Shown here: piece after piece, positions 1 to 35,600 of the stretch
How the letters are laid out: the number at the start of each line of letters is the position of its first letter
Position numbering within the stretch: the stretch's first letter is position 1
Origin: Haliotis rubra
Lineage: Eukaryota
Assembly: GCF_003918875.1 (NCBI RefSeq)
Contig: NW_025764955.1
Coordinates: 124,001 to 188,000 of the forward strand
Reading direction: 5' to 3'
DNA: 64,000 nucleotides
Position numbers and translations under genes: made by a program
Notes under the pieces: model-generated
Seen by the model: only the letters and a program-made list of their open reading frames with translations
Told to the model about the DNA's origin: nothing
The model's database searches: none

Positions 1-3000
1 CTGGCTGAACTCTACTTCAATATCAGCCCGAAGTTGGGATTCACCTTCGAGCTGTAGGGCAAGAATTATATATTTGAATGTGTATCGAACATCCATATTT
101 ATCGAGTAGCGTCTGTTATTTCGGTGAGAATATATCAGCTGTGTCAATATTTTATTTAAGTATGACATTGCAGAGAAAGGTTTGGTAATAACTGCTAAGC
201 TAAATAATGCAACAATCTTAAGTGAGTGAGTGAGTTAAAATTTAAAGTCACTTTGGCAATATTTCAGCCATATCGTGACTAAAACAAGTTAACAAGATTA
301 ACAACAAGTAATGATAGATTATAAAACCATGTCAACAAAGGACAGTAAAACAACTAGAACATCACAGATATAAATGTAAAACTAGCAATTAAATCTAAAA
401 CATTTTGACTATAGAGGACAACACAATATAAAAATAGGCTATAGATCGCCAACAACTGAGGGTAGATCACCATACCAGGGACCATGGGGACTTACAGTAC
501 CTTTGCTGACTGCATGGACCCTAGTTGGATTTACACCATCCCCTCAGCCGTTGGCGATTATAAGAAATGTTAGCCAAAATGAAAATAACAAGAATACTAC
601 GTTTAAAAATCCGGGTAAGTTTAAATTGACTTCCAAAGTTTTGGGACTTACGTACCCTCTCAGGGGGCAACAATCTTAAGAAATAATGTATTGAAACATA
701 TTGTGGATCCACAATGATTCATGTAACATCTAATTGTGTAAGTTAATGTATATTTTGTTTACTCTGGATGTGGGCCTGAGGCGTAAAATACAATGAACTT
801 CTTCTTCGAAGAAATGGTAACATACTGATACTTCTCACCTGTGATATGTATTTCACCAGTTTCGGCTTGTTGTTTACCTTCTTTATGAGTAGTTCACTGT
901 AATGATAAAGTATAAGATCTTCTTGACAAATTCAAGATACTCTAGATATGCAATATCACGGACTGGTAGGGTGATTCTTGATAGCGAGTTGAGTCCACCA
1001 GCTTCAACGATGCACCGATCGTACATTACAATGTCTATTTCGCCATGATTGGGATCCTTAGTATATCAGATGAACAAAAAGTGCTAATTGTATTCACCAA
1101 TAATGAACCATTCACAGCATGCTTCTACCAACTGCTGCCAACTGCTCGCCGACTGCCACCAACCTGCTGCTGATATAATCACAAGTGATTTGTAACAATA
1201 AATACCTTTGTCGTTTAGCCAACAAGGACCAAAATATCGTGAGCAGCCTCCTATGAATTGGGACCATAATGATACAATTCTTATGGGCGTTGTCAGTGTA
1301 TATGGCAAAACAAATGGTCGGAAAGTAAAGAAGAAGCAGTGGAATATCTTTCATCTACCTGAATGGGTGGGTCAATCAAACGCTTGGTAAAAAGAAATCC
1401 AGAAACAGAATACCATCCTCCCCCACCCCCATCATTGAGTCTGCTGGCTGCCCTGCTTAAAAAGTTGGCAACTCTTCCTATTGGTAGGACCTCAGCCTTA
1501 ACCTCAAACTATGTAAAACTTAAGGTGAGACGTTTAATCAATAAGTCTCTGCTATTTGACCATCCGTGATCGGTGTTGACTTGACATTTTGTTTAGGTTA
1601 GAATGTCAAATTACCGATATTTTAATGATTCTGTAGGTCCGCAGACCCCCAAAATGGGTAACGGGTCAGGGTCAATGACGTGGTTAATTACCTGTCATCA
1701 TACCGCCAAGGCGTGGATGAGTACCCACACTATCAATCACGTGATCGTCAGGTCAACATTCAGGTCAATTACTAGTCATGTAGTACAACTCTTGTTGCAG
1801 TCCAGCTTGTTTGAACACATTGATGATATGCAATATATCAACATGGATATACAATATATCAACATATCATATATCAACACTGATATGCAATATATCAACA
1901 TACTCACAACACATATGACATGTCTGTTCCTCCATGACAATCCATGCACCTCACAGTGAAGTCATCCTTCAGCATGAGAAGGTCTTCTTGCGACGGAGAA
2001 AATGTCACATTTAACTGTCTCGCACCTGAGGTCTTGTGGACTGCAAAGTATTTGTCTGGGGCACTGCTTTGATTATGATGTGTATTGAACGGAATTCTGG
2101 TTGAGAAATTGGCGTGCCAGTCGAGATTCCCGAGTATTTTGGTGAGGATATTCGACAGGTAACGGCGATGACGTCGCTTGGTTTCAACGGGCAGATCCGA
2201 TCGTCCAGGGCTGTAGCGGAAGTGAATGTTGGCTTCCTGTATCATGTCATAAGGCCTTGAAATGAAAGAACAGTCATTAAGTTTAGTTATGGTTAGTTAT
2301 GCTACCCTTTCGTATTTCCGTGAATTAACAGAGAAGTTGGCAGCGTCTTACAAGAGAACAAAATCGAACTTCTTTTTATGCCTCTCTTTTTGGGGGGGAA
2401 GGGGTTGGGTGTTTTTAGAGTGGGAGGGGTGGAGGGGAGTTTTTCAGCACTCAATTAATTAAACAGTGCTATAGTAAAATAATTAGTACATACATTTACA
2501 GCATCGTATTGTACGTTAGTAAAACAAGACATATCGGCATATAACTTCCCTGTTTCCGAATTCCTCGACAATTGATGTCGACGGTAATTGAAGTTCTTTC
2601 AGGAAACAATAAAAATGCTACATAAAATTTTAAACGTATTGTATTGTGGCTTTAACCATTAATCATTCAGTCGTGTTCACTCTCGATCTATGCCCTATTG
2701 CACTACCTGTAGTTAAGGCATCTGTCAGAATCAGGCACTATAATAAGGACAAACACATTGTGTAAAAGAAATGAAAGGTTCAATACAAACGACGGTGGGT
2801 GGCATGGTCATTTAAAAGTGACCAAATCAATGCTTGATGATGGTTCAATATTTTGCTTGACATGGACATATTGCTGGTGCTGAGGAATATATGGTACGGT
2901 TACACGTTACACTACTGACGGATCTCTTTACACGTCAACCAGCGTGTAATTTGAGTTGCCTACGTGAGACAATTGTTATCATAGTCTTGAACACATTCAA

Positions 3001-6000
3001 CTTATCTGCTACTTGTGAAAGTCGATAAGAAATTCGACAGCTTAAAATCATATCTCCCACTTTAGACAGTTGAAGGGTTTTCCATTTGTTGTAGAGACTT
3101 TGTATGAACGTTTCACACCGTGCAAACATGACCTAACTAAACAGTTATGAATATACATTAACACGTGTATACTTCGCTCAGTATGGGTAGTATTTGTGAT
3201 GGTGGGTCCGAACCTTTTGTAGGTTTCTCAATATCATACCCCTGCCTATATTGGGGAAACAACAAAACTGCAAAGTAACGTTTAATCCAACTCGGACATC
3301 CGCTTACACACGCTCGCACGTATTCATGATGTCGGCAATCCTATAACATTCCCTCTGGCTATAAAACATATAACGTATTCCACTTTCTCCTATTGGTATT
3401 GATGTAAATCAAGAAGCTGCTGGACATATTAAAGATTTAATCAGACAAAAGCGGACGTTACTTGTGCTTCAAATGTTCCGGATTGTCTCAAAGGGTATGT
3501 ACATTGAATTTTGTTAATTTGCTACTTTAGACTTGGCGTATCAAACACCAAAAACACTGTCATAGTCCGAAGTCAAACACTGCTCCAATGTGCACTTAAA
3601 TAATTTTTGATGGATAGTCCTATATGGTGCTGATGTAGGCGATACTGTTTCTACTTGTACAATACGAAACATCAATACGATTCCAGTGTAGGGCAATGGG
3701 CAGGTACCCTTTTCGTGAACACCTCTTTACAGTGTTATCACAGATTTTCAAACATCCATCCACATCATTTTCACCGTTCATATTTTGCCGTCTTTTACGA
3801 TAAATTGTTTCTGTTTGGCAGATAAACGAAACTGGTTAATTTTTTGACTGCCACCATATGCAAATTTAGTTAATTCAAGATAATATAGTAACCATGATTG
3901 TCTCTGGTCGTATTCCTCTACATTTTACGAAAGCGGTTCAGTCACAAAAGAGCCGAGCCTCCACTGCAGGCATTATCAAGGCTCAAAAGCTAGGAGTAGC
4001 TGCGCTGTCACCACTTCAATGTTATCAGGGAGACCCTCCTAAATTGTTGTCATCCGTTTTACTATCTCCAAGTATTCCCCGGTAGGCGTCATGATTATAT
4101 TAATTTATCATTTTGTCTGTTGTGTCATTTCCTTCAAAAAGGTGATATCTGACGCGAAGGAGTTTTATATCTCCAAAAATGCTTATTTTAGTACGAAACA
4201 TCTGTAATCGTATCGGATATTCTCTTTCTTAGAGCTCCTGAGAGGGTACGTAAGTCCCAAAACGTCAAAGTCAATTTAGCTCTACCAAACTTTTAATCGT
4301 AGAATATTTGTTATTTTTAATAATGGCTAAAACTCAGCACAATCGCCAGCGGCAGAAGGGATGGTGTAAATCCAGATAGGGTCCATGCAGGTAGCAAAAG
4401 TACTGAAAGTCCCCATGGATCTTCAGTTGTTGGTAATCTGTAGCCCGTTTTTATTTTGTACTGTCTATAGTGATTTAATTTTACAATAACGTACCAGTTT
4501 TAAATTTACATTTGTGATACTTTAATATTTTTACTGTCCTTCGATGACAGGTTTTTACGTTCTAAATTTATTGATTTTAATATTGATATAAATTGAATTG
4601 TTCTCGTCACGATATGGCTGTAGTATTGCCGATGTAACGCTAAATATTAACTCACTCACTCACACAATCTTTCTTAGAGGGGCGAAAAAGGTCCAATACA
4701 TACACTTCACGGTTAATTACTGGGAGTTTTAATCGAATCCTTTTCAGACTATTTGACATTAATTGTCAGTGTTGCTGCTTTGTAACATTTGGTGCGACTA
4801 ATGCCACAACCCATTATCGCGCACATGTGCATGTAGCCCTGTGTTCATTTTGTTTTACAAACTGTTAAAGGAATGAGAAATGGTTCAATAGACACACTGA
4901 CATTTACACCTGTTCTTTAAATTGTCAGTAACATGAAAAAACCTCGGTTTTCTTTCGTTTTTGTCATTTACTCAAATGATTACGCTTTCATGATGGAAAA
5001 AAAATCACTCCATTGGATAATGACTAAAATATCCCAGTACAAAATGATTGGGGTGAGTGAGTGAGTTTAGTTTTACGCCGCACTCAGCAATATTCCAGCT
5101 ATATGGCGGCGGTCTGTAAATAATCGAGTCTGGACCAGACAATCCAGTGATCAACAGCATGAGCATCGATCTGCGCAATTGGGAACCGATGACATGTGTC
5201 AACCACGTCAGCGAAACTGACCACCCGATCCCGTTAGTCGCCTCTTACGACAAGATAGTCGCCTTTTTTATGGCAAGCACATGGGTTGCTGAAGACCTAT
5301 TCTACCCCGGATCTTCACGGGTCACAAAATGATTGGGTGTCACTACGGTTTCATTGTTTGATGATGAACAGACAGAGACGTGCAGTCATGGGCACGATGT
5401 GTCTGGGGTGTTTGACAACCTGTGCTTGGATATTTCCTGATAGAATCGTTGCACACAGTTCTCCTGTTTTCAGCAAAACGTCACCACGTCTTCACAGTCA
5501 CTGCACACAGAAATGATTTAGTTCCTTGAGAGCCATTATAGAAGTTGAAATATGAAGGAAAACCAAGTTCTATGGATAGTCAACTTCTTAATTGCATTGA
5601 GTGCCATGTTTCGGCGTAGGTACTACCACTTGATTGATAACGGTGTTGGTACCTACGCCGAAACGTCGCACTCACTGCAATAAAGAAGGGCTTCACACGT
5701 CGTACCCATGAGGGGAACTTGACTATCCATAGAACTTGGTAATCCGTCACACGGAAATGACTTTAACGTGAAATTTACTCAAACAGTACGTCATCGTCGA
5801 CGTGAGACCGGTCTCCCGTCACGGATCCATGTATTCACATCTCATCCACCCGATATCACAACCAGACACTATCTGGGCTGAAAATCTGGTTTACGGTATA
5901 GGCAAGGATTGGCCTCCATTGCTATTCACTGATCGAGAAATTGTTTAGACCTCACAGATCGTCGTGCCCGAATGAGGAGGACGATTTCAGGAATACAATG

Positions 6001-6326
6001 TTGTCGAATATGACCGTTTTATAGGGAGCGAATCTTATGGCGTGGGATCAGTTGAGCTGGAAGAACCGATTGCTATGTTCCTTTAGGACACGATGTGAGC
6101 TGCAGTGATGACAAACGGATGTGTATGAATGCTGGTGCCGGACTGGACTTTATCGACATAGACGATATCCATCGTGTTGCGGCTGCTAGCAGGAGACCAT
6201 AACCACCAGACCTTACCATTATAAACCACATGTGAAACGAGCGGCAATTATACAGAAACTAAGCAATGATGGTAGCATGTATCCTTGGCAACCATCTAGA
6301 CACGTAAAAATAGCAGGAGACTACCC

Positions 6327-6358
<32 letters not shown>

Positions 6359-8395
6359 TGTGTTTGCATGTTGATCACAAACGCGCTACTGAGAGCTGAT
6401 TTATAGGGTAAACAGGACCTTTGGGCGGTTAGTTTAGATATTCTAATTTTAATTGCCGATCTGACTAATCATTGGTCACATTTATGGTGGCATTGCGTGG
6501 CACAATTTGTCTCACAGATAAAGGAACATCCGGCCAGCGTCAGCCTCTAGATTCATCACAGATTTGGCGGGTATGGTGAAATCACTTTGAACGAACACCA
6601 CTACATATTGTGAAAGGAGTGACTGACTGGGTATGGTTTTAAGCCGCTTTTAGCAATATTCTAGCAACATCAGAGCGGGGGACACCAGAAATGGGCTTCA
6701 CACGTCGTACCCATGAGGGGAATCGGCCTTGAGCGTCAGGCTACCTCACAGCCCCTTTTGTGAAAGGAAGTGTTACTGGACAGTCGTACCGGACAACACA
6801 CACTGATACCCTCAAATCACCACGGAAGAGTGTATTTACGACTTCGTCATTCGAAGTACTGGTATCCCTACCACGTTTGTGGTAGAGTATGTGTTGTTTT
6901 AATATAATTTTCTTAACAATCGCAAACAGCTGAAGGGACGGTGCAAGTACTCCTGGGTACTATGCAGGGAAAGGTGTTATATAATGGGAGATCATAACAT
7001 GGTAATTGTCGAAATTATATGATCAAGTCAAATGTTGCATTCCTGATTTGAGGGGGAAGTATTCATTATACCACAGGTATGCGAGATCCCGACAGTTTGG
7101 CCTAATTTAGGGTGTACGTGATATTTCAGTTTTCCTTCTAAAGATTTAGATTAAGAGAAACAGAGATGTAATGAACCTGTACCACTGAACCAGAAGCCAA
7201 TCTGGATCTTTAAGAAATCTTCATTTGCTGAACATTTAACTTCATCAAATTTAATTTCTGAACATCATGTATAAAACTCATCAAATCACTCACCCAGCAG
7301 GGACAACATGTATGGAAATACGATATTCAGTAGGAAAGTAGATGCTGGAGATCTTAGCATAGATCCCATCTCCACCAGATCCCTGTGACGCATTGCACCT
7401 CCATGTTGTGCTCCCCAGGATGAGCTGACCCACTCTCCAGTCCCTGCCCACATCCTTCTGAGTGGTCACCAACAGGATCCTGTCATCCACACACACGAGG
7501 CGCTGGAAAACATGCGTCCTCTCGTGATCGTTCTTGTTACTAATTATTGAAAATGAATATGAGTAGATGTCGAGTTTCTACTAATATTTTCAAAATCAAA
7601 TCAAAATCCACAAAATGAATCATAAATATGAAAGCCTTGTAGGGTGGCTATTAAAATTAGTTTCCAACTAACAGCATATTGTCGGGGATATACACTAATA
7701 AGCAGAAAAAAGAAATTGTACCAATATCAGGCCTGAAAGAAAGATATTCCTAACGTATAAGTAAATCACTATGCAATATGGAATTGAAATGTCAGTATCG
7801 CCTGTGTACCCACTGGCCCCAAGACACGCCAGCCCACGCCAGATTTGGCCACTTGGTACTCGGTACATATGTACATATGATCATATTTTTAATCTACTTT
7901 ATCAGAAATTAGAACCAGAACGTCTCCACAAAAATCAATTTGTGCTAAAGAATCCATAATGCTATCTGTCATCTGTGAAATGTTACAGACGAGTATATGA
8001 ATATGTTCTGAATTTTATCGCTTTGAATAGCATTTTATCAATTTCGACCATCGGATCCTGGCACGAATGCGGGACGCAACTTTAAATGTGCAACGGACTG
8101 TGGCGTCTTAGTTTTGGCAGGACCACCGGTATCTCTGCATGGAGTATCAGATCGGTTCAATGAAACTATATATGTACACACAAATTCATTGCAACCGTTC
8201 ATACCCACATACCTTTAGTCCATCAACACCATCAAGATCAACAACATCACTGAGGACACCAGAACTGTGAAGCTTGAACCGTTCTCCGTTGTCGTCAGTT
8301 GTGAAGTCCACGTTGTGGTGGAAGGAGTTGTCGGTAGAATGACTGTCGTGTGGGAACAGCCCCGATACAACAAAGAAGAAAACCAGACGCAACAT
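1..8395 (-). CDS. Uncharacterised secreted protein, multi-exon, 3' part beyond left edge of window
   Basis: Phase-compatible GT-AG exons on -: 8395-8213 (MLRLVFFFVVSGLFPH..., signal-peptide-like), 7502-7294 (RLVCVDDRILLV...), 2255-1908 (PYDMIQEANIHF...TKRRHRR...CMDCHG), 896-839 (FELLIKK...), 51-<1 (LEGESQLRAD...). 849 nt / 283 aa with no stop. Confidence 0.8.
223..666 (-). mobile_element. SINE-like retroelement family B with (ACTC)n tail
   Basis: 14-bp TSD gcaacaatcttaag (209-222 / 667-680); homologous to 4235-4667 and 45131-45386. Confidence 0.75.
1815..1900. repeat. Short minisatellite (atatgcaatatatcaaca-like units)
   Basis: About 4 degenerate ~20-bp units next to the exon donor at 1907. 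Confidence 0.6.
4235..4667 (+). mobile_element. SINE-like family B copy
   Basis: TSD tctttcttagag (4223-4234 / 4668-4679); ends aactcactcactcac; inverted homolog of 223-666. Confidence 0.75.
5053..5323 (-). mobile_element. SINE-like family A copy
   Basis: 14-bp TSD acaaaatgattggg (5039-5052 / 5324-5337); (ACTC)n tail; homologs at about 9385, 10378, 18035 and 52990. Confidence 0.8.
5562..5740. repeat. Imperfect palindrome, probably a Penelope-like pseudo-LTR remnant
   Basis: Arms of about 60 bp, accaagttctatggatagtcaa...ggcgtaggtac and its reverse complement; contains gccgaaacgtcg...aataaa, typical of PLE pLTRs. Confidence 0.55.
6328..6362. repeat. (GT)n microsatellite
   Basis: Visible directly. 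Confidence 0.95.
6619..6757 (-). mobile_element. tRNA-related SINE family C, internally deleted
   Basis: TSD ttgtgaaagga; homologous to 20704-20860 and 27866-28020. Confidence 0.65.
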
Positions 8396-8661
8396 GACAA
8401 GCCTGCGGTGTGTTCAGCTGTACGCCATGATCTGTTATATACGCTTGATAAGACAGAATGTATTCTTTCGACAACAGTCCCCGCACTGGTTTTGAGTTAA
8501 ATAAAACCCAGCCAAACTGAATACGTTATCTTTCTGTCACTCACATTGCTTGTAACGCCTGCTAAACTGCTGTAAGTGCATTGGATAATAAAAATAACTT
8601 GTCAGTATATACAGTAGGCTGTTAGCTAAGGTTCCTCCAGAGCTGCGCGTACACCGCTATC
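8396..8661. promoter_or_regulatory. Putative bidirectional promoter / 5' UTR region
   Basis: 266 bp between two divergent ATGs that each begin a signal-peptide exon. No core motif confidently identified. Confidence 0.5.
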
Positions 8662-11600
8662 ATGAAGAGCGCTGGCTGGGTAGGAGCCACCCTCCTGCTA
8701 CTGTGCTCATACAGTCAGGGGTATTTCTTCCAAGACGACTACGACCATCAGTATACCTACTCTTCTATGTCGGAACTGTTCGGCCATAAAAATATCACCA
8801 CTGTTCTGAAGGTAAGTTGTAATTATTAACCTGTAATGTGAACATGCATTTTCAAAGTTTCAATATTTATTGGAAACCTTCAGCTCCTGACATGCAAACT
8901 TAGTGGGCGACACGCTTTTCCCACAGCCTTGTACACCACTTAACTATATATAGGACTCAAGCTTGAACAGTTCAGTAATTTCATATATTGTAAAATATAC
9001 CAATTTCATCACAGATATGCCGTTTACTTCTATTGAAATCTGTTTCGGAGATAATCGAAACTTATTCTATGGCGCTGACTTGTAAATTATCCCAAAAAAA
9101 TTGTAAGCCAAACTAGAATACTTTGACGGAATAAATAAACGCATGGGTGTTTTTGAATACCTTCAGTTCAAGATCAGAGCCCTCAATACGACAGGGGATG
9201 GCGGGAGACTGCATTCGTTACGTGTGATCAGTATTGTGCAGTTTGCAGATGGCAGATGTGAGTATTTTTTCACGTTTATTGTTGTCCAACAACATCTTGA
9301 TACATATATACAAAACAAAAAACGAAACTTCACATGTGTCACTTTATGTCCCAAACATACCCTTATAGTTTTAGTTTTAGTGAGGGAGTGAGTTTAGTTT
9401 TACGCCGCACTCAGCAATATTCCGGCTATAAGGCGGAACCCCTATAGTGTGTTGCTAGTGGATAAATCCGGGTTATCGATGATTAGGCATTAAGCTGCGT
9501 CAGGTGCACCCTTTAAAGTCAACGGTAGGATGATAGGTTCACCTTTTTATTTCATCTGTATTGATGTTTGTTCTGTACCGCGTATGCCCCCTCTCGTGTT
9601 CACAACAGCAAGACAACGTTGTCTCATTGAACACCCATGAACACAGCATTAGGCAGCCTGTGCCATTGCTGTACCAACATGGCGCCCAGCACTTCAACAT
9701 TCTGGGGTTGATGTCTCAAGGCACGAAAACTTTTCACAGAGCATCCCATGCTTGTCCGATTGGATTGTGGTCAGTTGGTCTTGATGACCACTCCATGACG
9801 TCAATACCCGCATTTTGCAGGATATGTGTCAAAACAGCTGTGTGTGGTGTGGCATTGTCATGTTGGAATTGAGGTCAGGACCATGACCAGCCGAGAAACA
9901 GGTCCAGGTCAAGGAAATGGTCACGATATCCCGCTGCATTGACGTTCCCACCAATTACGAGAAGACGTGAGGGCACGATCCCGCAGAAAGCTCCCCAAAC
10001 TATTACGCTGTCGCTACGAAATTGACCAGCTTCATGTAGCTGCACTGGAGTTGACGTTCAGCGTTCCGACGCCACGCTCCGTCGGCAAATCGCGGCGTAA
10101 ACCGTATAAACAACCCGATTTCATTCTCCTGGTCCCAGTGCATGTGCAATTGTGCCCAGCGTAGACATTCTTTACGGTTTACCTCGGTCAGAATCGGCCA
10201 AACAGTTTCGAGTCCCCTAAATGGTGCGATACTGGTTCACCTTGCGGTCATCAACTGACGTAGCCGGCATGTGGCGTTACACGCCCCCGTCCTGATCATG
10301 ACCTGGGGCGATCTGTCTTCTGCATCTCAGGGCACGCGTAACAGCCACAGTACTCTAGCCAGTACACTGGCAGTTAGGAGTGAGTGAGTCTAGTTTTACG
10401 CCGCTCTCAGCAATTTTCCAGCTGTATGGCGGCGGTCTGTAAATTATCGAGTCTGGACCAGACAATATAGTGAGCAGTCAGCAGCGTGAGCATTGATCGA
10501 CGCAATTGGGATACGATGACATGTGTCGGCCAAGTCAGCTTGTCTGACCACCCGATCCCGTTAGTCACCTCTTACGACAGGCATGGGTAACTGAAGATCA
10601 ACTCTAACCTGGATCTTCACTGGTTGGTAGCAAGGAACATGAAACTGTGGTCACGTGAACCCGCACACGTGCAGGGTCGCGATTTCACAAAAGAGCGTGC
10701 TGCATGCACCCCGCGTGGTTTACCACAGTTGAAATGGATGGATGCGTCAGGTCAGACCTAGCTTTATGGTATTTGCCCACATTAACTACCTTGTAGACCC
10801 CTGAAGATCCAGGTCAGACCTAGCTTTATGGTATTTGCCCACATTAACTACCATGTAGACCCCTGAAGATCCAGGTCAGACCTAGCTTTGTGGTATTTGC
10901 CCACATTAACTACCATGTAGACCCCTGAAGATCCAGGTCAGACCTAGCTTTATGGTATTTGCCCACATTAACTACCATGTAGACCCCTGAAGATCCAGGT
11001 CAGACCTAGCTTTATGGTGTTTGTCCACATTAGCTACCTTGTAGACCCCTGAAGATCCAGGTCAGACCTAGCTTCATGGTATTTGCCCACATTAACTATC
11101 TTGTAGACCCATAAAGATGCAGGTCAGACCTAGCTTTATGGTATTTGCCCACATTAACTACCATGTAGACCCCTAAAGATCCAGGTCAGACCTAGCTTTG
11201 TGGTATTTGCCAACATTAACTACCTTGTAAACCCCGGAAGATCAAGGTCAGACCTAGCTTTATGGTATTTGCCAACATTAACTACCATGTAGACCCCTGA
11301 AGATCAAGGTCAGACCTAGGTTTGAGGTATTTGCCCACATTAACTACCATGTAGACCCCTGAAGATCCAGGTCAGACCTAGCTTCATGGTATTTGCCCAC
11401 ATTAACTACCTTGTAGACCCCTGAAGATCGAGGTCAGACCTAGCTTTGTTGTATTTGCCCACATTCACTACCTTGTAGACACCTGAAGATCCAGGTCAGA
11501 CCTAGCTTTATGGTATTTGACCACATTAACTACCTTGTAGACACCTGAGGATCCAGGTCAGACCTAGCTTTATGGTATTTGCCCACATTAACTACCTTGT

Positions 11601-14600
11601 ACACCCCTGAAGATCCAGGTCAGACCTAGCTTTGTTGTATTTGACCACATTAACTACCTTGTAGACCCCTGAAGATCCAGGTCAGACGTAGCTTCATGGT
11701 ATTTGCCCATATTAACTACCTTGTAGACCCTTGAAGATCCAGGTCAGACCTAGCTTTGTTGTATTTGACCACATTAACTACCTGTAGACCCCTGAAGATC
11801 CAGGTCAGACCTAGCTTTGAGGTATTTGACCTCATTAACTACCTTGTAGACCCCTGAAGATCCAGGTAAGACCTAGCTTTATGGTATTTGCCCACATTAA
11901 CTACCTTGTAGACCCCTGAAGATCGAGGTCAGGCCTAGCTTTATGGTATTTGCCCACATTAACTACCTTGTAACCCCTGAAGATCGAGGTCATACCTAGC
12001 TTCGTGGTATTTGCCCACATTAACTACCTTTTAGACCCCTGAAGATCCAGGTCAGACCTTGCTTTATGGCATTTGAACACATTAACTACCTTGTAGACCC
12101 CTGAAGATCCAGGTCAGACGTAGCTTTGTGGTTTTTCTCTCACATTAACTACCTTGTAGACACCTGAAGATCCAGGTCAGACCTAGCTTTGTGGTATTTG
12201 ACCACATTAACTACCTTGTAGACCCCTGAAGATGCAGGTCAGACCTAGCTTTGTGGTATTTGCCCACATTAACTACCTTGTAGACCTCTGAAGATTGAGG
12301 TCAGACCTAGCTTCATGGTATTTGCCAACATTAATTACCTTGTAGATCCCTGAAGATCAAGGTCAGACCTAGTTTCATGGTATTTGACCACATTAACTAC
12401 CTTGTGGACACCTGAAGATCAAGGTCAGACCTAGCTTCATGGTATTTGCCCACATTAACTACCTTGTAGACCCCTGAAGATCAAGGTGAGACCTAGCTTT
12501 GTTGTATTTGCCCACATTAACTACCTTGTAAACCCCTGAAGATCAAGGTCAGACCTAGCTTTATGGTATTTGCCAACATTAACTACCATGTAGACCCCTG
12601 AAGATCAAGGTCAGACCTAGGTTTGAGGTATTTGCCCACATTAACTACCATGTAGACCCCTGAAGATCCAGGTCAGACCTAGCTTCATGGTATTTGCCCA
12701 CATTAACTACCTTGTAGACCCCTGAAGATCGAGGTCAGACCTAGCTTTGTTGTATTTGCCCACATTCACTACCTTATAGACACCTGAAGATCCAGGTCAG
12801 ACCTAGCTTTATGGTATTTGACCACATTAACTACCTTGTAGACACCTGAGGATCCAGGTCAGACCTAGCTTTATGGTATTTGCCCACATTAACTACCTTG
12901 TACACCCCTGAAGATCCAGGTCAGACCTAGCTTTGTTGTATTTGACCACATTAACTACCTTGTAGACCCCTGAAGATCCAGGTCAGACGTAGCTTCATGG
13001 TATTTGCCCACATTAACTACCTTGTAGACCCTTGAAGATCCAGGTCAGACCTAGCTTTGTTGTATTTGACCACATTAACTACCTTGTAGACCCCTGAAGA
13101 TCCAGGTCAGACCTAGCTTTGAGGTATTTGACCACATTAAACCTACAGACCTGTAGATCAAGGTCCCTGAAGATCCAGGTCAGACCCCTAGCTTTTATGG
13201 TATTTGCCCACATTAACTACCTTGTAGACCCCTGAAGATCGAGGTCAGACCCTAGCTTTTATGGTATTTGCCCACATTAACTACCTTGTAGACCCCTGAA
13301 GATCGAGGTCAGACCTAGCTTTGTGGTATTTGCCCACATTAACTACCTTGTAGACCCTGAAGATCCTGAAGATCCAGGTCAGACCTAGCTTTATGGTATT
13401 TGCCCACATTAACTACCTTGTAGACCCCTGAAGATCCAGGTCAGACCTAGCTTTGGTATGGTATTTGCCCACATTAACTACCTTGCAGAGACCCTGAAGA
13501 TCCAGGTCAGACCTAGCTTTGTTGTATTTGCCCACATTAACTACCTTGTAGACCCTGAAGATCCAGGTCAGACCTAGCTTCATGGTATTTGCACCACATT
13601 AACTACCTTGCTTGTAGCCCACATTAACCCTGAAGATCCAGGTCAGACCTAGCTTTGTGAAGATCGAGGTCATAGACCTAGCTTCCATGTGGTATTTGAC
13701 CACATTAACTACCTTGTAGACTTGAAGATCCAGGTCAGACCCCTTCATGGTAGCCCACATTCCAGGTCAGAGGTCAGACCTAGCTTTGTGGTATTTGCCC
13801 ACATTAACTACCTTGTAGACCCCTGAAGATCCAGGTCAGACCTAGCTTTGAGGGTATTTGCCCACATTAACTACCTTGTAGACCCCTGAAGATCCAGGTC
13901 AGACCTAGCTTTTGAGGTATTTGCCCACATTAACTACCTTGTAGACCCCTGAAGATCCAGGTCAGACCTAGCTTTGTGGTATTTGATCCAGGTCATTAAC
14001 TACCTTGTAGACCCCTGAAGATCAAGGTCAGACCTAGCTTTATGGTATTTGACCACATTAACTACCTTGTAGACCCTGAAGATCCAGGTCAGACCTAGCT
14101 TCACGGTATTTGCCCACATTAACTACCTTGTAGACCCCTGAAGATCCAGGTCAGACCTAGCTTTATGGTATTTGCCCACATTAACTACCTTGTAGACCCC
14201 TGAAGATCCAGGTCAGACCTAGCTTTATGGTATTTGCCCACATTAACTACCTTGTAGACCCCTGAAGATCGAGGTCAGACCTAGCTTCGTGGTATTTGCC
14301 CACATTAACTACCTTGTAGACCCCTGAAGATCCAGGTCAGACCTAGCTTTATGGCATTTGCCCATATTAACTACCTTGTAGACCCCTGAAGATCCAGGTC
14401 AGACCTAGCTTTATGGTATTTGCCCACATTAACTACCTTGCAGACCCCTGAAGATCAAGGTCAGACCTAGCTTTGTTGTATTTGACCACATTAACTACAT
14501 TGTAGACCCTCAAGATCCAGGTCAGACCTAGCTTCATGGTATTTGCCCACATTAACTACCTTGCAGAGCCCTGAAGATTGAGGTCAGACCTAGCTTTGTT

Positions 14601-17600
14601 GTATTTGACCACATAAATTAACTTGTATACCCCTGAAGAGCCAGGTCAGGCCTAGCTTCATGGTATTTGCCCACATAAACTACCTTGTAGACCCTTGAAG
14701 ATCCAGGTCAGACCTAGCTTTGTTGTATTTGACCACATTAACTACCATGTAGACCCCTGAAGATCCAGGTCAGACCTAGCTTTGAGGTATTTGCCCACAT
14801 TAACTACCTTGTAGACCCCTGAAGATCCAGGTCAGACCTAGCTTTATGGTATTTGCCCACATTAACTACCTTGTAGACCCTTGAAGATCGAGGTCAGTTC
14901 TAGCTTTATGGTGTTTGCCCACATTAACTACCTTGTAACCCCTAAAGATCGAGGTCAGACCTAGCTTCGTGGTATTTGCCCACATTAACTACCTTGTAGA
15001 CCCCGGAAGATCAAGGTCAGACCTAGCTTTGAGGTATTTGCCCACATTAACTACCTTGTAGACCTCTGAAGATCGAGATCAGACCTAGCTTTATGGTATT
15101 TGCCAACATTAACTACCTTGTAGACCCCTGAAAATCCAGGTCAAGCCTAGTTTCATGGTATTTGACCTCATTAATTACCTTGTAGACCCCTGAAGATTGA
15201 CGTCAGACCTAGCTTTATGGTATTTGCCCACATTAACTACCTTGTAGACCCCTGAAGATCCAGGTCAGACCTAGCTTTGTGGTATTTGCCCACATTAACT
15301 ACCTTGTAGACCCCTGAAGATCCAGGTCAGGCCTAGTTTCGTGGTATTTGACCACATAAACTACCTTGCAGACCCCTGAGGATCCAGGTCAGACCTAGCT
15401 TTGTTGTATTTGACCACATTAACTACATTGTAGACCGTGAAGATCCAGGTCAGACCTAGCTTTATGGTATTTGCCCACATTAACTACCTTGTACACCCCT
15501 GAAGATCCAGGTCAGACCTAGCATCATGGTATTTGCCCACATTAACTACCTTGTAGACCCCTGAAGATCCAGGTCAGACCTTGCTTTGTTGTATTTGCCC
15601 ACATTAACTACCATGTAGACCCCTGAAGGTCCAGGTCAGACCTAGCTTCATGGTATTTGACCACATTAAGTACCTTGTAGACTCCTGAAGATCCAGGTCA
15701 GACCTAGCTTCATGGTATTTGCCCACATTAACTACCTTGTAGACCCCTGAAGATCAAGGTCAGACCTAGCTTTGAGGTATTTGCCCACATTACCTACCCT
15801 GTAGACCCCTGAAGATCCAGGTCAGACCTAGCTTTGAGGTATTTGCCCACATTAACTACCATGTAGACCCCTGAAGATCCAGGTCAGACCTAGCTTTGTG
15901 GTATTTGCCCACATTAACTACCTTGTAGACCCCTGAAGATCAAGGTCAGACCTAGCTTTGTGGTATTTGACCACATTAAGTACCTTGTAGACCCCTGAAG
16001 ATCCAGGTCAGACCTAGCTTCACGGTATTTGCCCACATTAACTACCTTGTAGACCCCTGAAGATCCAGGTCAGACCTAGCTTTATGGTATTTCCCACATT
16101 AACTATCTTGTAGACCCCTGAAGATCCAGGTCAGACCTACCTTCGTGGTATTTGACCACATTAACTACCTTGTAGACCCCTGAAGATCCAGGTCAGACCT
16201 TGCTTTGTTGTATTTGCCCACATTAACTACCTTGTAGACCCCTGAAGATCCAGGTCAGACCTAGCTTTGAGGTATTTGCCCACATTAACTACCTTGTAGA
16301 CCCCTGAAGATCCAGGTCAGACATAGCTTTGTGGTATTTGCCAACATTAACTACCTTGTAGACCCCTGAAGATCAAGGTCAGACCTAGCTTTATGGTATT
16401 TGACCACATTAAGTACCTTGTAGACCCCTGAAGATCCAGGTCAGACCTAGCTTCATGGTATTTGCCCACATTAACTACCTTGTAGACCCCTGAAGATCCA
16501 GGTCAGACCTAGCTTTATGGTATTTGCCCACATTAACTACCTTGTAGACCCCTGAAGATCCAGGTCAGACCTAGCTTTATGGTATTTGACCACATTAACT
16601 ACCTTGTAGACCCCTGAAGATCCAGGTCAGACCTAGCTTTGTGGTATTTGACCACATTAACTACCTTGTAGACTCCTGAAGATCCAGGTCAGACCTAGCT
16701 TCATGGTATTTGCCCACATTAACTACCTTGTAGACCCCTGAAGATCCAGGTCAGACCTAGCTTTGAGGTATTTGCCCACATTACCTACCCTGTAGACCCC
16801 TGAAGATCGAGGTCAGACCTAGCTTTGTGGTATTGGACCACATTAACTACCTTGTAGACCCCTGAAGATCGACGTCAGACCTAGTTTTGAGGTATTTGCC
16901 CACATTAACTACCTTGTAGACCCCTGAAGATCCAGGTCAGACCTAGCTTTGAGGTATTTGCCCACATTAACTACCATGTAGACCCCTGAAGATCCAGGTC
17001 AGACCTAGCTTTGTGGTATTTGCCCATATTAACTACCTTGTAGACCCCTGAAGATCAAGGTCAGACCTAGCTTTGTGGTATTTGACCACATTAAGTACCT
17101 TGTAGACCCCTGAAGATCCAGGTCAGACCTAGCTTCATGGTATTTGCCCACATTAACTACCTTGTAGACCCCTGAAGATCCAGGTCAGACCTAGCTTTAT
17201 GGTATTTCCCACATTAACTATCTTGTAGACCCCTGAAGATCCAGGTCAGACCTACCTTCGTGGTATTTGACCACATTAACTACCTTGTAGACCCCTGAAG
17301 ATCCAGGTCAGACCTTGCTTTGTTGTATTTGCCCACATTAACTACCTTGTAGACCCCTGAAGATCCAGGTCAGACCTAGCTTTGAGGTATTTGCCCACAT
17401 TAACTACCTTGTAGACCCCTGAAGATCCAGGTCAGACCTAGCTTTGTGGTATTTGCCAACATTAACTACCTTGTAGACCCCTGAAGATCAAGGTCAGACC
17501 TAGCTTTATGGTATTTGACCACATTAAGTACCTTGTAGACCCCTGAAGATCCAGGTCAGACCTAGCTTCATGGTATTTGCCCACATTAACTACCTTGTAG

Positions 17601-20600
17601 ACCCCTGAAGATCCAGGTCAGACCTAGCTTTATGGTATTTGCCCACATTAACTATCTTGTAGACCCCTGAAGATCCAGGTCAGACCTTGCTTTGTTGTAT
17701 TTGCCCACATTAACTACCTTGTAGACCCTTGAAGGTCCAGGTCAGACATAGCTTTGTTGTATTTGACTACATTAACTACCTTGTACAACCCCTGAAGATC
17801 CAGGTCAGACTTAGCTTCATGGTATTTGACCACATTAACTACCTTGTAGACCCCTGAAGATCCAGGTCAGACCTTGCTTTGTTGTATTTGCCCACATTAA
17901 CTACCTTGTAGACCCTTGAAGATCCAGGTCAGACATAGCTTTGTTGTATTTGACTACATTAACTACCTTGTAGACCCCTGAAGATCCAGGTCAGACTTAG
18001 CTTCATGGTATTTGACCACATTAACTACCTTGTAGACCCCTGGAGATCCAGGTCAGAAGTGGTCTCCAGCAACTCATGTTTGTCGTAAGAGGCGACTGAC
18101 GGTATCGGATGGACAGGCTTGCTGTCTTGTTTGACACATGTCATCGTATCCAAATTTTGTAAATTGATGCTCATGATGTAAATCACTGGATTGTCTAGTC
18201 CAGACTCCATTACTTACAGACCACCGTGATATAGTCGTGATATTGCTGAGAGCGGCGTTAAACAACAAAACAATAACTACCTTGTACTAACCATTTTCAA
18301 TTTAATTCATTTCTCCAAATGTGAAGTTTCTCTCTTTGTTCAGTATACAATCCTCAGATAAACCCTTTCATAATAAATGTTCAGATAATAATGATCGTAA
18401 AAGCCGAGTGAAATGAGACTCATTTGGTCGCAATGTGTCACCTACCTGATAGTGAATACACATTTTCGAAAACACACTTTCAAAACAAATATGTTTTCCT
18501 ATTTTGCAGACTTCAGTAACCCCAAAGGTTGGAATTTGAAAACAATGTGAGTATCTTTACAACCTGTTACGGACATGTAGTTATGGTTTTGTGTTCCACT
18601 GGCGGTGGTCAACGTAGCAATCACGTGATACCATCACAGAGTTCTTCCTGGTGCTTTTGTCATGAAATGGTTATGTTTACATAAAAAAAACTATAGAAGT
18701 GAATGACCCTAAGCACTGAACTGAGTGAGTTGATGATAAATAGCAGGTAATATAAGCGGGCACTATTTTCATATCACCGAACGGATCGTTTAGATTAACG
18801 TAAATCCTTCTGAATGGCACTAATCGATATACGATCGATATAATGTTTCTTTACATCAGTTTGGAATAGACAAATGTTTGTTTTGACTGAAATGGTGATG
18901 GGGGTGGAGGAGTGTGTGAGGTGGGCATATGTGTCAGTGCGGATGTCCGTTCTCCCAACTCCCAAACCGTTGATTATCTCTAAATGATACACGTCATATA
19001 GGTACGCTTAGTAATAAACAGGCGCCTTTGGATGATTTGAGATTTGTTGAACGTGAACATGCATTTGGCATGCTCCAGGCTGGCCAGTCTACTGTGGCTG
19101 TTGTACGTTCCATGAGATGTAGTAGACGGACAATTCAAAACCTGAGGACACGTGTGCATCGAACGAGTACGACATCTGATCGCCCCAGGTCAGAACGGCC
19201 ACGTGTGACATCACATGCATGTAGATGACAATCAAATTCTGTTTCGTTATTTGCGTGATCGTTTCATGACCGCCAGGAATTGGCTGTTTAGGGGTCGTTT
19301 AACTGCCCAGACCACACGAAACCGCATGCGCGCTGTTTATATACGTGTCCGACGTCCTTATATTTGGCTGATGACATAAGTAACATCTACGCTGGGCACA
19401 ACTGCACCTGCGGTGGCACCAAAGAGAACAGAATAGGGTTGCGTTTAGAGGCGAATCTCGTTTTACACTGCGATTTGCCGACGGAAGTGTGCTAGTGAGG
19501 CGTCGGTGCGGTGAACGTCACGTCACGCCCAGTGCTGCGAACAGGAAGTTGACCGATTACGTGGTGGTATCGTAATGGTATGGAGAGCTTTCTGCGGGAA
19601 CGTGCCCTCACGTCTTCTCGTAATTGGTGGGAACGTCAATGCAGCGGGATATCGTGACCATTTCCTTGACCTGGAGCTGGTTCGTGGCTGCTCATGGTCC
19701 AGACCTCCAATTCCAACATGACAAGGCCACACCACACACAGCTGTTTTGACACATATCCTGCGCGGGTATTGACGTCATGGAATGGCCATCGAGATCACC
19801 TGACCGCAACCCCATCCAACACGTAAGGGGTGTTCTTGAAGGAAACATCTTCATGCCTTGAGACGTCAGCCCAAGAATGCTGTTGAGCATGAGTCTGTTC
19901 ATTTGTTTTATTTTTTTTCTTGTGTTGATGTTTTAGGATCTTGTATGTGTTATGGGTCATCAAACAATTGTATTTCGTCCACTTGTGTATAGCACCTGTC
20001 TCTTTATACACCCGCATCATGGTGATCGTACCATCGTGTTTGATCCTGCTCCTTGTCACTGGGTGACATTTGCTGGAGACTTCTTCTGATTCTTTAGACG
20101 TCTTTACAGGTTTTTATTACTCTCCTTGCAGATTCCTGTTTCGGACTAGTACTAAAGGATCTATTGACCTGGTCCGTGTCCATCCTGAAGACGAGGACGA
20201 GCTGGTGGTCATCAAGAAAGCTGTCACCAGTCTTTTCTCTGTTACTGTCAGGGTATACATTGTGATACTATATGTAAAACTTCAATGTCAGAGAAAAAGC
20301 ATCCACGATTTTCTGCCCAAACTGATGCCATTTGGTGTGAAAGGCCAAATTGACATGAAAATCACATAAATGCTATGAAAACATATATAATATTATAAAC
20401 TCTTGCCTGAGCTTAGCTACAAAATTGTACATTGTACAAAATCAAATTCTTAGATTTAACATGTTGACACACTGGCTACTTTGCTGGGCATACTTTATGC
20501 TCCATGTTTTTTCTCAATAATAAAAGTATGAGTTTGTTCTGATATACGTTTGCGGTGATTAATGTTAACTTAATCCCATCGTGAAGCGGCGTAGTTCTAC

Positions 20601-32600: not shown

Positions 32601-35600
32601 TGTGCTATTTGAGGTTAAAAGTGTTTCAGTCTCAAATGATATGCCTTTGGATATAGTCCCAAGTATCGTTTGCTTCGCTGATGAGGTGAATATCCCTCAG
32701 TGCTGTTAAACAATATTTGCTTTCTCTACTGACAGCAATGTGATGATTTTTGTCACTGCAGAGAAAGGTGCATAAACGAATCCACGACGTGCAACAGAAC
32801 ATATCTCACTACCTGCAGTGTGTGCATATGTATCCCGCGAAAGGTAAAACTTGCCAGTAAAGAGGATCCTGCTCTCACAATGAAAAGAATGTGAGAGTGG
32901 TAAATTCTATTGAACGAAACGAAAAATATTTCATGCAATAATTGCAAATTTATTAAACAGGAGGTGCTTGCTAAACATTAAAAACAGTGTTTTTATGGGC
33001 GTAACACCGTGACCATTTTTCTTGTATTTACACGTACAATAAAATATCTCATATTCCACTATATTGACCTGTTGTATAGGTGACGCTAACCGAACCCAGT
33101 GTGTACAGGAACTCCGGGAGATTCTACAGGCACTTCACCCAGAGGACTACAAGGAGTTCGTCAACTCGGTTCTTAACGTGTCTTGTGGAGCAGCGGAGTC
33201 CAACTGTTCGGTGGAAAGACTCGTCTTCATAGATATTGTCGCCAGAATTGCTGATGAAATATCTCAAGAACTTATCGTCAAACATGTTCTCAACAGGACA
33301 GACCCCAACGAAGAGGAACTACGACATGTGTTTATACACTGCATTGCAATAGCGAAGCCGATCATGGTTGGTACATGTGCATATAACCGTGAATGGTTAT
33401 ATAGAACATATGGAGTATAGAAGAAACTTGACCTCAAAAAGTAGTGTTGATCAAGCAATGATACTAATGTTAACAACTGAATTTATCATAGGTCATGTAA
33501 TCTGTGTATTGCTTATAGATGTGTGTAATTACTATTTCTAGCCAATAAATGATATATTTCCACATTTTAGCAAGTCGTCCGTGCTGTAGAGGGTTACTGC
33601 TTTGGTGTTGGAGATCAGCATCATGGTATGTCATTGAAACATTGACAGTAAGCAGCTGTATATTACTTATTATAAGAAAAAGCAATTCGTTCATATATTA
33701 CACTGTAAGTTCTTTCTTTCTTGGGGTATGTATCAATCTTTTTATTAACAATGTTTCTTATGTATGTTTGACAGGTTCAATAAATCTGACAGTGGTACAA
33801 ACTCGGGCGTGTTTGGCTGTGGGATCTCTTGCTAGGAACCTTCATCTCTACTCGAATTCTTCAGATGCTGTCAGACTGGTTGAGAAGATCGAGTCATGGA
33901 TCACTAAACACGAAATGCGTAAAGATACCATCTCTCATTGTTGTACTCTGAATTATACACTGGCATCAATATTTTACAAAATACTGATAGTTTAAGATAT
34001 ATAAGATGCGTCTGTTATTTTTGTGTTTTGATGCTAGTACACAGGACATCTTGATAATAATGTTTATTGTTCGATCAGCCATAACATGTCAAAGAGTTTA
34101 AAGGAGAAAAATCTTTCGCTGCAGTTTTAAACCATAATGTACACACGTCAGGGTAATTTATGCCATGAAGCCATGTGTCTATGTCTTGCAGTATTTCCGG
34201 CTTTCTATCAAAAGGCTAACAGACCGTCTTATAACAGGAATACAGTTTAAACCACCTCAAATAAACTGGGACCTATGATACACAGCAATATTTAAAAGTG
34301 TGTGTTTTTCGTTCATAGATCCTCACTACAGGCACAAAAGGTCAGTCCGTATTGAAAAGGATAGTCACTACATTATCTCCAAGAAGATACTGCTTCACAG
34401 CCTTGGAAATGCTGGTCATCCACAATCACTCAACAGAATTATCTCCCTTACTTCACCTGGACACGGTCACCACGACTGGAGACGTGCGGCAGTTGAGGCA
34501 CTAAGGCACTATCGGTGTAACCAGGTACAAAGACAACAAAGAAATATATCTTAAAGTTCATGTTTTGTAAAGACAGAGAGCAGGTTTTACAAATATAACA
34601 ATGTCCATAATACTCTGAAAAGTATTTTAGTCATTAATTATGAGCATATAAACCGTATAATATTAAATGTTTCGATACAGATTCTTGTACCGTTGTCAAG
34701 CAGGAGAATCTGTATCGAAAGGGCGCACTCAAGAAATAAGTTATAACCCGTAGGTTACATATATACATTGCTATGTATATACCTTGTCACTTTGTCATTA
34801 CTGAATTTATCAAACAAATTAAAATAACTATAATTTATGTTAGGATCCACTAGATAACCTCAAAGCCTTAAGAAGTATAGAATAAATTAAATTATTCCTG
34901 ATTTTTGATTGATCCTTGTCAGTCAGTTGCTCAGTTGTAATCATTTATACACAACACGGCACGACTTGTGAATTTTGATAACATTTTAACAGAGTGCGGG
35001 AGCATTGCTTGAGAGTGCTCTTCGAGATGCCAAGCAGAGTGTTAGACGAGCAGCCAGATACCTGTACCTCAAGCATCCAAGGGCAAACAACTTAACACAT
35101 GAACAACAGAACATTATTCTGAGGTACTGGATACTGCAAAGAACGTACAACGAAATATATTATTATAGACTAATAACGTGATTTCATGTGCAAAGCATTT
35201 CGACAACCACATTTTCATTCAATCGAAAAGACTGATACAACAATTACTTCAAAACAGTTTCTGTGAATCATTTTCTTTGCCACAATTATATTGAACACGT
35301 TCATCTTGACGACCTAAGGGTAATTCCGGAAATGCGCATTTTGCTTTTTGTTTCAGCCACTCTTACGCATGGCCAGTAATTGCCAGAATGAGGAGAAGCG
35401 TGTTAGATGCTGTTCTCTTCCAGTTTAGATTAGCTTTGCCTCACGTGGACTGGAAAAAAGAGATAGGGAACAGTGCCATTGGGGCCAGTTTTGGTGTCCT
35501 CTTTGAAAACGAAATGTCAGCAGTTTTCCGTAAGTTCTGTAAACAGCAAGCAGCTGATAATAAGTTAAATCCTGGTTCCAGTTATCAAACAGCACTTGAG

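Follow-up and report, generated by a model that had tools for sequence, protein, structure and literature searches.

Introduction

COL4A1 and COL4A2 form a conserved bidirectional gene pair whose secreted products co-assemble. To our knowledge, few animal gene pairs have kept a head-to-head order over hundreds of millions of years, and those that have usually encode products that need to be produced together. The N-domains of hedgehog proteins bind fn3 domains of Ihog, CDO, and BOC as well as lipophorin particles. In Hedgling, an N-terminal Hedge domain is followed by VWA, cadherin, and EGF repeats (Buerglin 2008, PMC2362128). Here, we describe two divergently oriented genes, A and B, that encode predicted secreted proteins in the abalone Haliotis rubra. 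They were found in a 64,000-nt stretch of RefSeq assembly GCF_003918875.1 (contig NW_025764955.1, here C65, positions 124001–188000, forward strand), referred to below as the window; the assembly comprises 1.38 Gb, and the window contains no runs of N. Protein A includes Hedge-type domains, and B is a giant protein with a vitellogenin-like head and fn3-type repeats. On balance, we favour with moderate confidence the view that A and B are an anciently linked, divergently transcribed gene pair, conserved from abalone to three bivalve orders.

The Head-to-Head Pair and Its Spacer

Whole-protein work on A used the database models P0021 (the RefSeq model of a recent A copy, 91–97% identical), P0058 (a distant Haliotis paralogue from a locus on contig C1491), and P0068 (the H. 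rufescens orthologue of A, 1391 amino acids (aa)); the exons in the window were searched singly.

The first-pass annotation of the window had described two first exons that encode signal peptides and diverge from 8395 and 8662, separated by a 266-bp spacer with no recognisable transposable element. The positions and leaders were verified. The ATG at 8395 (minus strand) opens the leader of gene A (MLRLVFFFVVSGLF...), and the ATG at 8662 (plus strand) opens that of gene B (MKSAGWVGATLLLLC...); both have the usual layout of a signal peptide, as judged by eye. Going by the ATGs only, the two starts lie on opposite strands and less than about 1 kb apart, which is the geometry of a bidirectional pair. 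The intergenic spacer, a presumed bidirectional promoter region (8396–8661, 266 bp from ATG to ATG), is repeat-free, and both the spacer and the two first exons showed low-copy depth in three DNA runs. The annotation had assigned the pair to 1–8811. The divergent signal-peptide starts in this interval were upheld, but the interval holds no more than exon 1 of gene B and the first fifth of gene A, because further exons of A run left of the window.

Depth in the DNA runs was 100 to 10,000 times greater over 4100–4700, 4900–5700, and 6500–6900, and these stretches were therefore classified as repeats. They resemble short interspersed nuclear elements (SINEs), lie inside intron 2 of gene A, and have many further matches on the contig. 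In the copy on contig C2693, this intron measures only ~0.3 kb.

Linkage across Molluscs

Conserved microsynteny and orientation in other molluscs had been put forward as a test of the pairing, and both were found. The head-to-head arrangement of the A and B homologues recurs in H. rufescens, Saccostrea, Pecten, and Sinanodonta; Batillaria and a second Haliotis locus have them adjacent in tandem order. The H. rufescens sequence is collinear with the window over B exons 1–4, the spacer, and A, and its spacer (~258 bp) is ~80% identical. The spacer measures 320 bp in Saccostrea echinata (ATGs at 7225 (−) for B and 7546 (+) for A), 524 bp in Pecten maximus (8308 (−) for B and 8833 (+) for A), and 1202 bp in Sinanodonta woodiana (L038:11860 (−) for B and 13063 (+) for A, the latter with a leader). 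In H. asinina and Batillaria, a B-like gene is followed by A in tandem. Homologues of B exon 1 that end alike (...K|GT) scored E about 1e-9 to 1e-10 in Sinanodonta and Pecten. In Saccostrea, the exon was recognised by pattern, and the neighbour of A was identified as B by this exon-1 pattern together with an exon of the vitellogenin region (E 7e-8). Because the homologues stay head-to-head or adjacent in these species, we regard A and B as a linked and probably co-regulated pair.

Some details of gene annotation around the A homologues were recorded along the way. The deposited A model of Sinanodonta begins at L038 10001–10063, beyond B exon 1; an in-frame ATG with a leader stands directly before the conserved exon 1 at 13063, and the annotated first exon is probably spurious or alternative. 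The upstream neighbour of the second Saccostrea A copy was considered as a B candidate and rejected, having no similarity to B. In Ylistrum balloti, the divergent upstream neighbour of the A gene is a peptidoglycan-recognition (Amidase_2, PGRP) gene (L041 119–3872). Lingula anatina has two A-family copies arranged tail-to-tail (L045 10001–15070 and 18008–22131), the first of which is split into two genes in the annotation.

Copies in the Haliotis rubra Genome

The A–B pair occurs in five recent copies in the H. rubra genome, with 88–97% aa identity in the examined exons. All five are head-to-head, with spacers of 199–266 bp that preserve the TATA-like blocks and most of the flanking ones. Exons 1 and 3 of gene A are intact in every one of the five, with ratios of nonsynonymous to synonymous substitution rates (dN/dS) of 0.23–0.48 at dS of 0.04–0.14. 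Two much older paralogous pairs (26–57% aa identity) are located on contig C1491; their genes lie on the same strand, B-like first, ~14 kb apart. Counting all loci in the genome that match A exon 3, seven of seven adjoin a locus matching B exon 1.

The A-like open reading frame (ORF) on C1491 lies on the same strand as B-like exon 1, 57 kb downstream of it, and A was considered as the last exon of a B-like gene. This candidate structure was rejected: P0058 has its own signal peptide and B homology stops 14 kb upstream, so the two are separate genes.

Several irregular copies were also detected. At C110:178558–178709 (L017/L009), B exon 1 carries three homopolymer-length indels (net +2 nt) that break the frame, reflecting either a pseudogene or a long-read assembly error. 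An isolated copy of a C-terminal exon of gene A at C670:9829–10104 is 67% identical and contains stop codons; it is probably a pseudogene fragment. Near-identical copies of a B exon were found on C2693:418951–419556, C68, C417, C2210, and C1668:3838931, far from the first exons of B or on other contigs. Because of these stray exon copies in a fragmented assembly, any count of B copies, or of complete ones, is provisional.

Promoter-like Elements in the Spacer

Each side of the spacer contains a promoter-like block. On the A side, a TATA-like element (TATATAA on the minus strand) stands 39–45 bp upstream of the A ATG, and together with an adjoining GATA-type motif it occupies 8434–8452 (minus strand). 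In the alignment, all five copies and H. rufescens preserve most of the TATA-like part. The GATA-type motif (TGATAAG, 8446–8452) retains its GATAAG core in H. rufescens and in four of the five copies, the core being changed in the copy on C431; a second GATA-type motif is located at 8525–8531. On the B side, a conserved block (8585–8612, plus strand) ends in the TATA-like sequence TATATAC (8606–8612), 50–56 bp upstream of the B ATG. Its TATA-like core and near flank (GTCAGTATATACA) show no change in any of the copies or in H. rufescens, and a few substitutions fall elsewhere in the block. From their sequence, we infer that the TATA-like and GATA-type elements on both sides have a promoter function. 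Co-regulation of A and B is suggested because of the geometry of the pair and because the promoter-like blocks are conserved within Haliotis.

The same observations bear on a different explanation, namely that overlapping promoters or enhancers hold A and B together while their products act independently. Such regulatory entanglement would account for spacers of 266–524 bp in three genera and for the core promoter blocks conserved within Haliotis. However, A and B have stayed linked after inversion to a tandem order in Batillaria, in H. asinina, and at the second Haliotis locus, where gaps of 6–14 kb separate them. As a tandem order with such gaps implies that a constraint from a shared promoter no longer applies there, we consider it fairly unlikely that entanglement explains the adjacency, and continue to favour an anciently linked pair.

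Age of the Pair

The age of the pair was estimated from a maximum-likelihood tree of 16 A-family proteins (A only). One clade (support 94/98) unites the window type with Batillaria, Sinanodonta, and Saccostrea-901. Another (support 91/92) contains the C1491 type, H. asinina, Pecten, Ylistrum, Saccostrea-1490, and Pinctada. Both of these non-cephalopod mollusc clades thus hold gastropods, bivalves, and head-to-head members, and because the head-to-head arrangement is present in each of the two old clades, the pair seems older than the gastropod–bivalve split. The simplest reading of the tree would be that the head-to-head pair existed, and was duplicated as a unit, before that split, with later inversions in some lineages. 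The four mollusc orders compared have been separated since the early Palaeozoic.

Adjacency of this age might also be an unselected relic of ancestral gene order that happens to be unbroken. Passive retention of this kind would be compatible with the loss of adjacency, or its absence within 10 kb, in several lineages, and with at least two changes of orientation. It is harder to reconcile with an adjacency shared by two old paralogous lineages and by four mollusc orders, with intergenic distances of <1.3 kb, and with the B exon 1 match beside every one of the seven A exon 3 loci in the H. rubra genome. We therefore find it very unlikely and retain the view that linkage of the pair has probably been maintained.

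Several results weigh against an old pair that is driven by a common promoter. None of the runs on record as RNA that were checked for the locus contains it. Between the spacers of four genera, no 7-mers or 8-mers are common and shared 6-mers occur at chance level; common cis-motifs across these spacers were rejected as candidates, since k-mer sharing was no higher than chance. A and B need not share a promoter, as the tandem order in Batillaria and at the second Haliotis locus shows. In Ylistrum, Octopus, and Lingula, and at the second Saccostrea copy, the A homologue was found to have no B-like gene within reach. In amphioxus, a 3392-aa fn3-type giant is encoded downstream of an A-like gene, and no homology between this giant and B was detected. 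Finally, the two clades of the A tree have only moderate support, and duplication of A together with B is read from this tree of A.

Structure of Gene A

Gene A (minus strand) consists of ~20 exons encoding ~1390 aa and extends ~11.4 kb past the left edge of the window, to window coordinate about −11,359. The coding part of exon 1 (8213–8395) comprises the start codon, the signal peptide, and 61 codons in all, followed by a phase-0 GT donor at 8212–8211; its structure is the same as in P0021. Exon 2 (7294–7502; 69 codons plus 2 nt) has the acceptor ...ttttccag and the donor GTGAGT, matches an exon of P0021, and has counterparts in Batillaria, Sinanodonta, Saccostrea, and Octopus. Exon 3 (1908–2255) is bounded by a phase-2 acceptor and a phase-2 GTGAGT donor, both at identical positions in the distant paralogue on C1491. 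Exon 4 (839–896; 1 nt plus 19 codons) was placed by comparison with P0021, and the start of exon 5 occupies 1–51; exon 5 and ~15 more exons continue to the left. A tblastn search with P0021 and P0068 located these ~15 exons left of the window, covering 1357 of 1391 residues, and the exon structure agrees with both RefSeq models. Direct splicing of exon 1 to the exon with the KRRHRR motif was also considered and rejected, because the phase-0 donor does not match the phase-2 acceptor; the exon at 7502–7294 fills the gap.

The minus-strand protein had initially been pictured as short, a description that has to be replaced by one of a ~1390-aa multidomain protein with Hedge-type domains encoded by ~20 exons. 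Taken literally, the earlier model was that of a small secreted protein contained wholly within 1–8395, cut at TKRRHRR, bearing the CMDC motif, and partnering the plus-strand protein. The ORF at 1907–2296 does stop at a stop codon and appears self-contained. A conserved GTGAGT donor nevertheless precedes that stop codon, and at least 15 further exons are collinear with homologues of 1390–1404 aa. The small-protein model is refuted by this gene structure as read from the sequence, and we give it next to no weight.

One possible RNA run, which is tiny and consists mostly of repeat coverage, yielded a 231-nt contig that matches A exon 2 in minus-strand orientation and departs from the genomic sequence exactly at the donor of this exon. 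This fits a spliced A transcript, as a hint only. Just past the 3′ end of gene A, at window coordinates of about −12719 to −12468 (L035:7281–7532, minus strand), there is an 84-aa ORF that matched no Pfam family. Matches to this ORF lie directly 3′ of the A homologue in Saccostrea (L039:22619–22711) and ~10 kb downstream of it in Ylistrum (L041:26630–26821).

Domains of Protein A

From its N-terminus, protein A comprises a small beta domain, a furin-type site, a large all-beta region, a Hedge domain, a degenerate Hedge-like segment, a LAS/M15-type domain, a Cys-rich tail, and a multibasic site near the C-terminus. Relatives of 0.9–1.5 thousand aa were found in gastropods, bivalves, cephalopods, a brachiopod, a starfish, and amphioxus. 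A core of Hedge plus M15-like domains recurs in one sponge protein and one choanoflagellate protein that have other architectures.

Exon 3 of gene A carries the convertase-type site and the CxxC motif. The first-pass annotation had reported TKRRHRR followed by CMDC on the minus-strand protein, and both were recovered on that strand: the multibasic site K-R-R-H-R-R at 2162–2179, followed by Y-L-S-N, and C-M-D-C at 1937–1948. Most mollusc homologues retain the CxxC motif; Batillaria does not have it. R-x-(K/R)-R followed by x-S-N stands at the same alignment position in the Haliotis paralogues, Batillaria, Sinanodonta, and Pecten, and cephalopods lack it; the proposed convertase site is thus conserved across gastropods and bivalves. 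In the structural model, KRRHRR falls within a loop of low confidence (low pLDDT, residues 149–183). With the motif conserved in both classes and modelled in a low-pLDDT loop, A is a predicted proprotein-convertase substrate. A second multibasic site near the C-terminus (RRKR/RRRR) is kept between Haliotis paralogues.

The N-terminal 560 residues of A were modelled at a pLDDT of 70.8 as a small beta domain, the disordered loop with the multibasic site, and a large sheet of strands of 20–25 residues. Searches for the fold of this N-terminal half gave nothing significant with Foldseek (MTP probability 0.57), a best VIA match of Z 6.5, which is within noise, and <0.9 in the Atlas features search.

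The Hedge domain begins near residue 540. The Pfam family HH_signal (PF01085) matched the A exon at L027:6731–6880 (−) with an E of 8e-5 and P0021 with an E of 2.9e-17. When P0058 was compared with PDB sequences, chains of solved hedgehog N-domains aligned to the Hedge region (E about 1e-6), and the SLHY-GRA core is kept. At the position of the Asp zinc ligand of Shh, the first Hedge domain has Q in P0058 and, as read from the sequence, V in the window gene type. A degenerate second Hedge-like segment follows downstream. No Hint/Hog domain was found in A: HH_signal was the only Pfam family in P0021, P0058, P0006, P0003, P0026, and P0044. Lacking a Hint domain, A is therefore not a hedgehog gene.

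The third domain corresponds to the 283-aa exon after the second Hedge-like segment and was modelled from 27 homologues (pLDDT 85.6). Its best structural match was the zinc D-Ala-D-Ala peptidase 1LBU (Z 9.9, root-mean-square deviation 2.4 Å over 118 aa), followed by ShhN (Z 6.8), Hh, and phage M15 endolysins (Z 5.5–5.8); Foldseek alone gave nothing significant for this model. By these matches, the domain is predicted to have the LAS fold. Across the 27 aligned sequences, no His is invariant or nearly so, and F and E occupy the H-x(6)-D positions. Because the family lacks an invariant histidine, the domain is most likely non-catalytic and probably serves as a binding module.

Gene B

Exon 1 of gene B (8662–8811, plus strand) comprises the start codon and signal peptide in 50 codons and ends at a phase-0 GTAAGT donor. 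Exon 2 was placed at 9167–9257 by splice consensus and frame only, and the block is conserved in the C2693 copy and H. rufescens. The remaining exons of this giant gene, encoding the vitellogenin-like head, PAN, and fn3-type repeats, are spread over 20067–64000 as collinear tblastn matches to the paralogous locus, and further collinear matches take the gene past the window to coordinate about 66,570. Pfam searches gave Vitellogenin_N on the exon at 34279–34551 (E 0.0011, below the cut-off), PAN_1 (E 1.2e-5), and fn3 (E 4e-8). The B orthologues measure 4900–5900 aa; PF01347 is on record for that of Sinanodonta, and the H. asinina paralogue has a weak Vitellogenin_N match. Repeats of the B type are present in other genes too.

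Between exon 2 and the next conserved exon, gene B has an intron of ~10.8 kb in the window (9167–20067) compared with ~1.8 kb in H. rufescens (L047 6207–7938). The difference coincides with a stretch of satellite and SINE sequence at 10748–18286.

Discussion

The pairing of A and B is probably functional. We propose that the 266-bp spacer would act as a shared bidirectional promoter, from which it would follow that a common set of secretory cells expresses A and B, at linked levels. Furin-type convertases of the secretory pathway would cut the precursor of each protein, and selection would keep the linkage because the products of A and B work together extracellularly. Our most likely guess is that the non-catalytic Hedge and M15-like modules of A bind B or a ligand carried by B. 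A physical A–B complex is possible. A single complex prediction, pairing Hedge domain 1 of P0021 with five fn3-type repeats of B (residues 46–560, exon 59278–62700), returned no verdict and counts neither way. A stronger version, drawn by analogy with the binding of hedgehog N-domains to fn3 domains and to lipophorin particles, would have the Hedge and M15 modules of A dock on the fn3-type arrays of the lipoprotein-like giant B in an obligate extracellular complex, kept and duplicated as a bidirectional pair since before the gastropod–bivalve split; this seems to us quite unlikely.

A conserved divergent pair of two uncharacterised secreted families is more interesting than a chance juxtaposition would be. 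Both partners are large proteins, and their pairing gives a first concrete functional hypothesis, that of joint action in one secretion. The A family also bears on the use of Hedge domains outside hedgehog signalling. No description of the Hog-less A family was found in a limited literature search, which included the LOC/locus identifiers of the A homologues; keywords returned only general papers on hedgehog evolution.

Compared with hedgehog proteins, A shares a domain that matches HH_signal and solved hedgehog N-domains and keeps the SLHYEGRA-type core motif. Unlike them, it has no Hint/Hog domain, its Hedge domain lies in the middle of a ~1390-aa protein rather than N-terminally behind the signal peptide, and it adds the second degenerate Hedge-like segment and the M15-like third domain. 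In A, as in Drosophila Hh, the Asp zinc ligand of Shh is replaced. A Hedge domain without Hog in a large secreted protein also characterises Hedgling and the other Hedge-only proteins of sponges and cnidarians (PMC2362128), whereas A has no Pfam matches to VWA, cadherin, or EGF, its Hedge domain is not N-terminal, and its family is found in molluscs, a brachiopod, a starfish, and amphioxus. The third domain of A is predicted by modelling to share its fold with LAS/M15 zinc D-Ala-D-Ala peptidases such as the Streptomyces albus DD-peptidase (1LBU), but it lacks their His/Asp/His zinc ligands.

Gene B is reminiscent of large lipid transfer proteins cut by furin (apolipophorin II/I and vitellogenin), with which it shares multibasic sites and probably a vitellogenin-type N-terminal region. 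It differs in being far larger and in having PAN and many fn3-type repeats, and the Vitellogenin_N match in the window is below the Pfam cut-off. As a pair, A and B resemble gene pairs of the COL4A1/COL4A2 type in their head-to-head arrangement, in a spacer of a few hundred bases, in the secretion of both products, and in long conservation. The differences are that A and B belong to unrelated families and are not paralogues, and that their orientation has been lost in some lineages while their adjacency persists.

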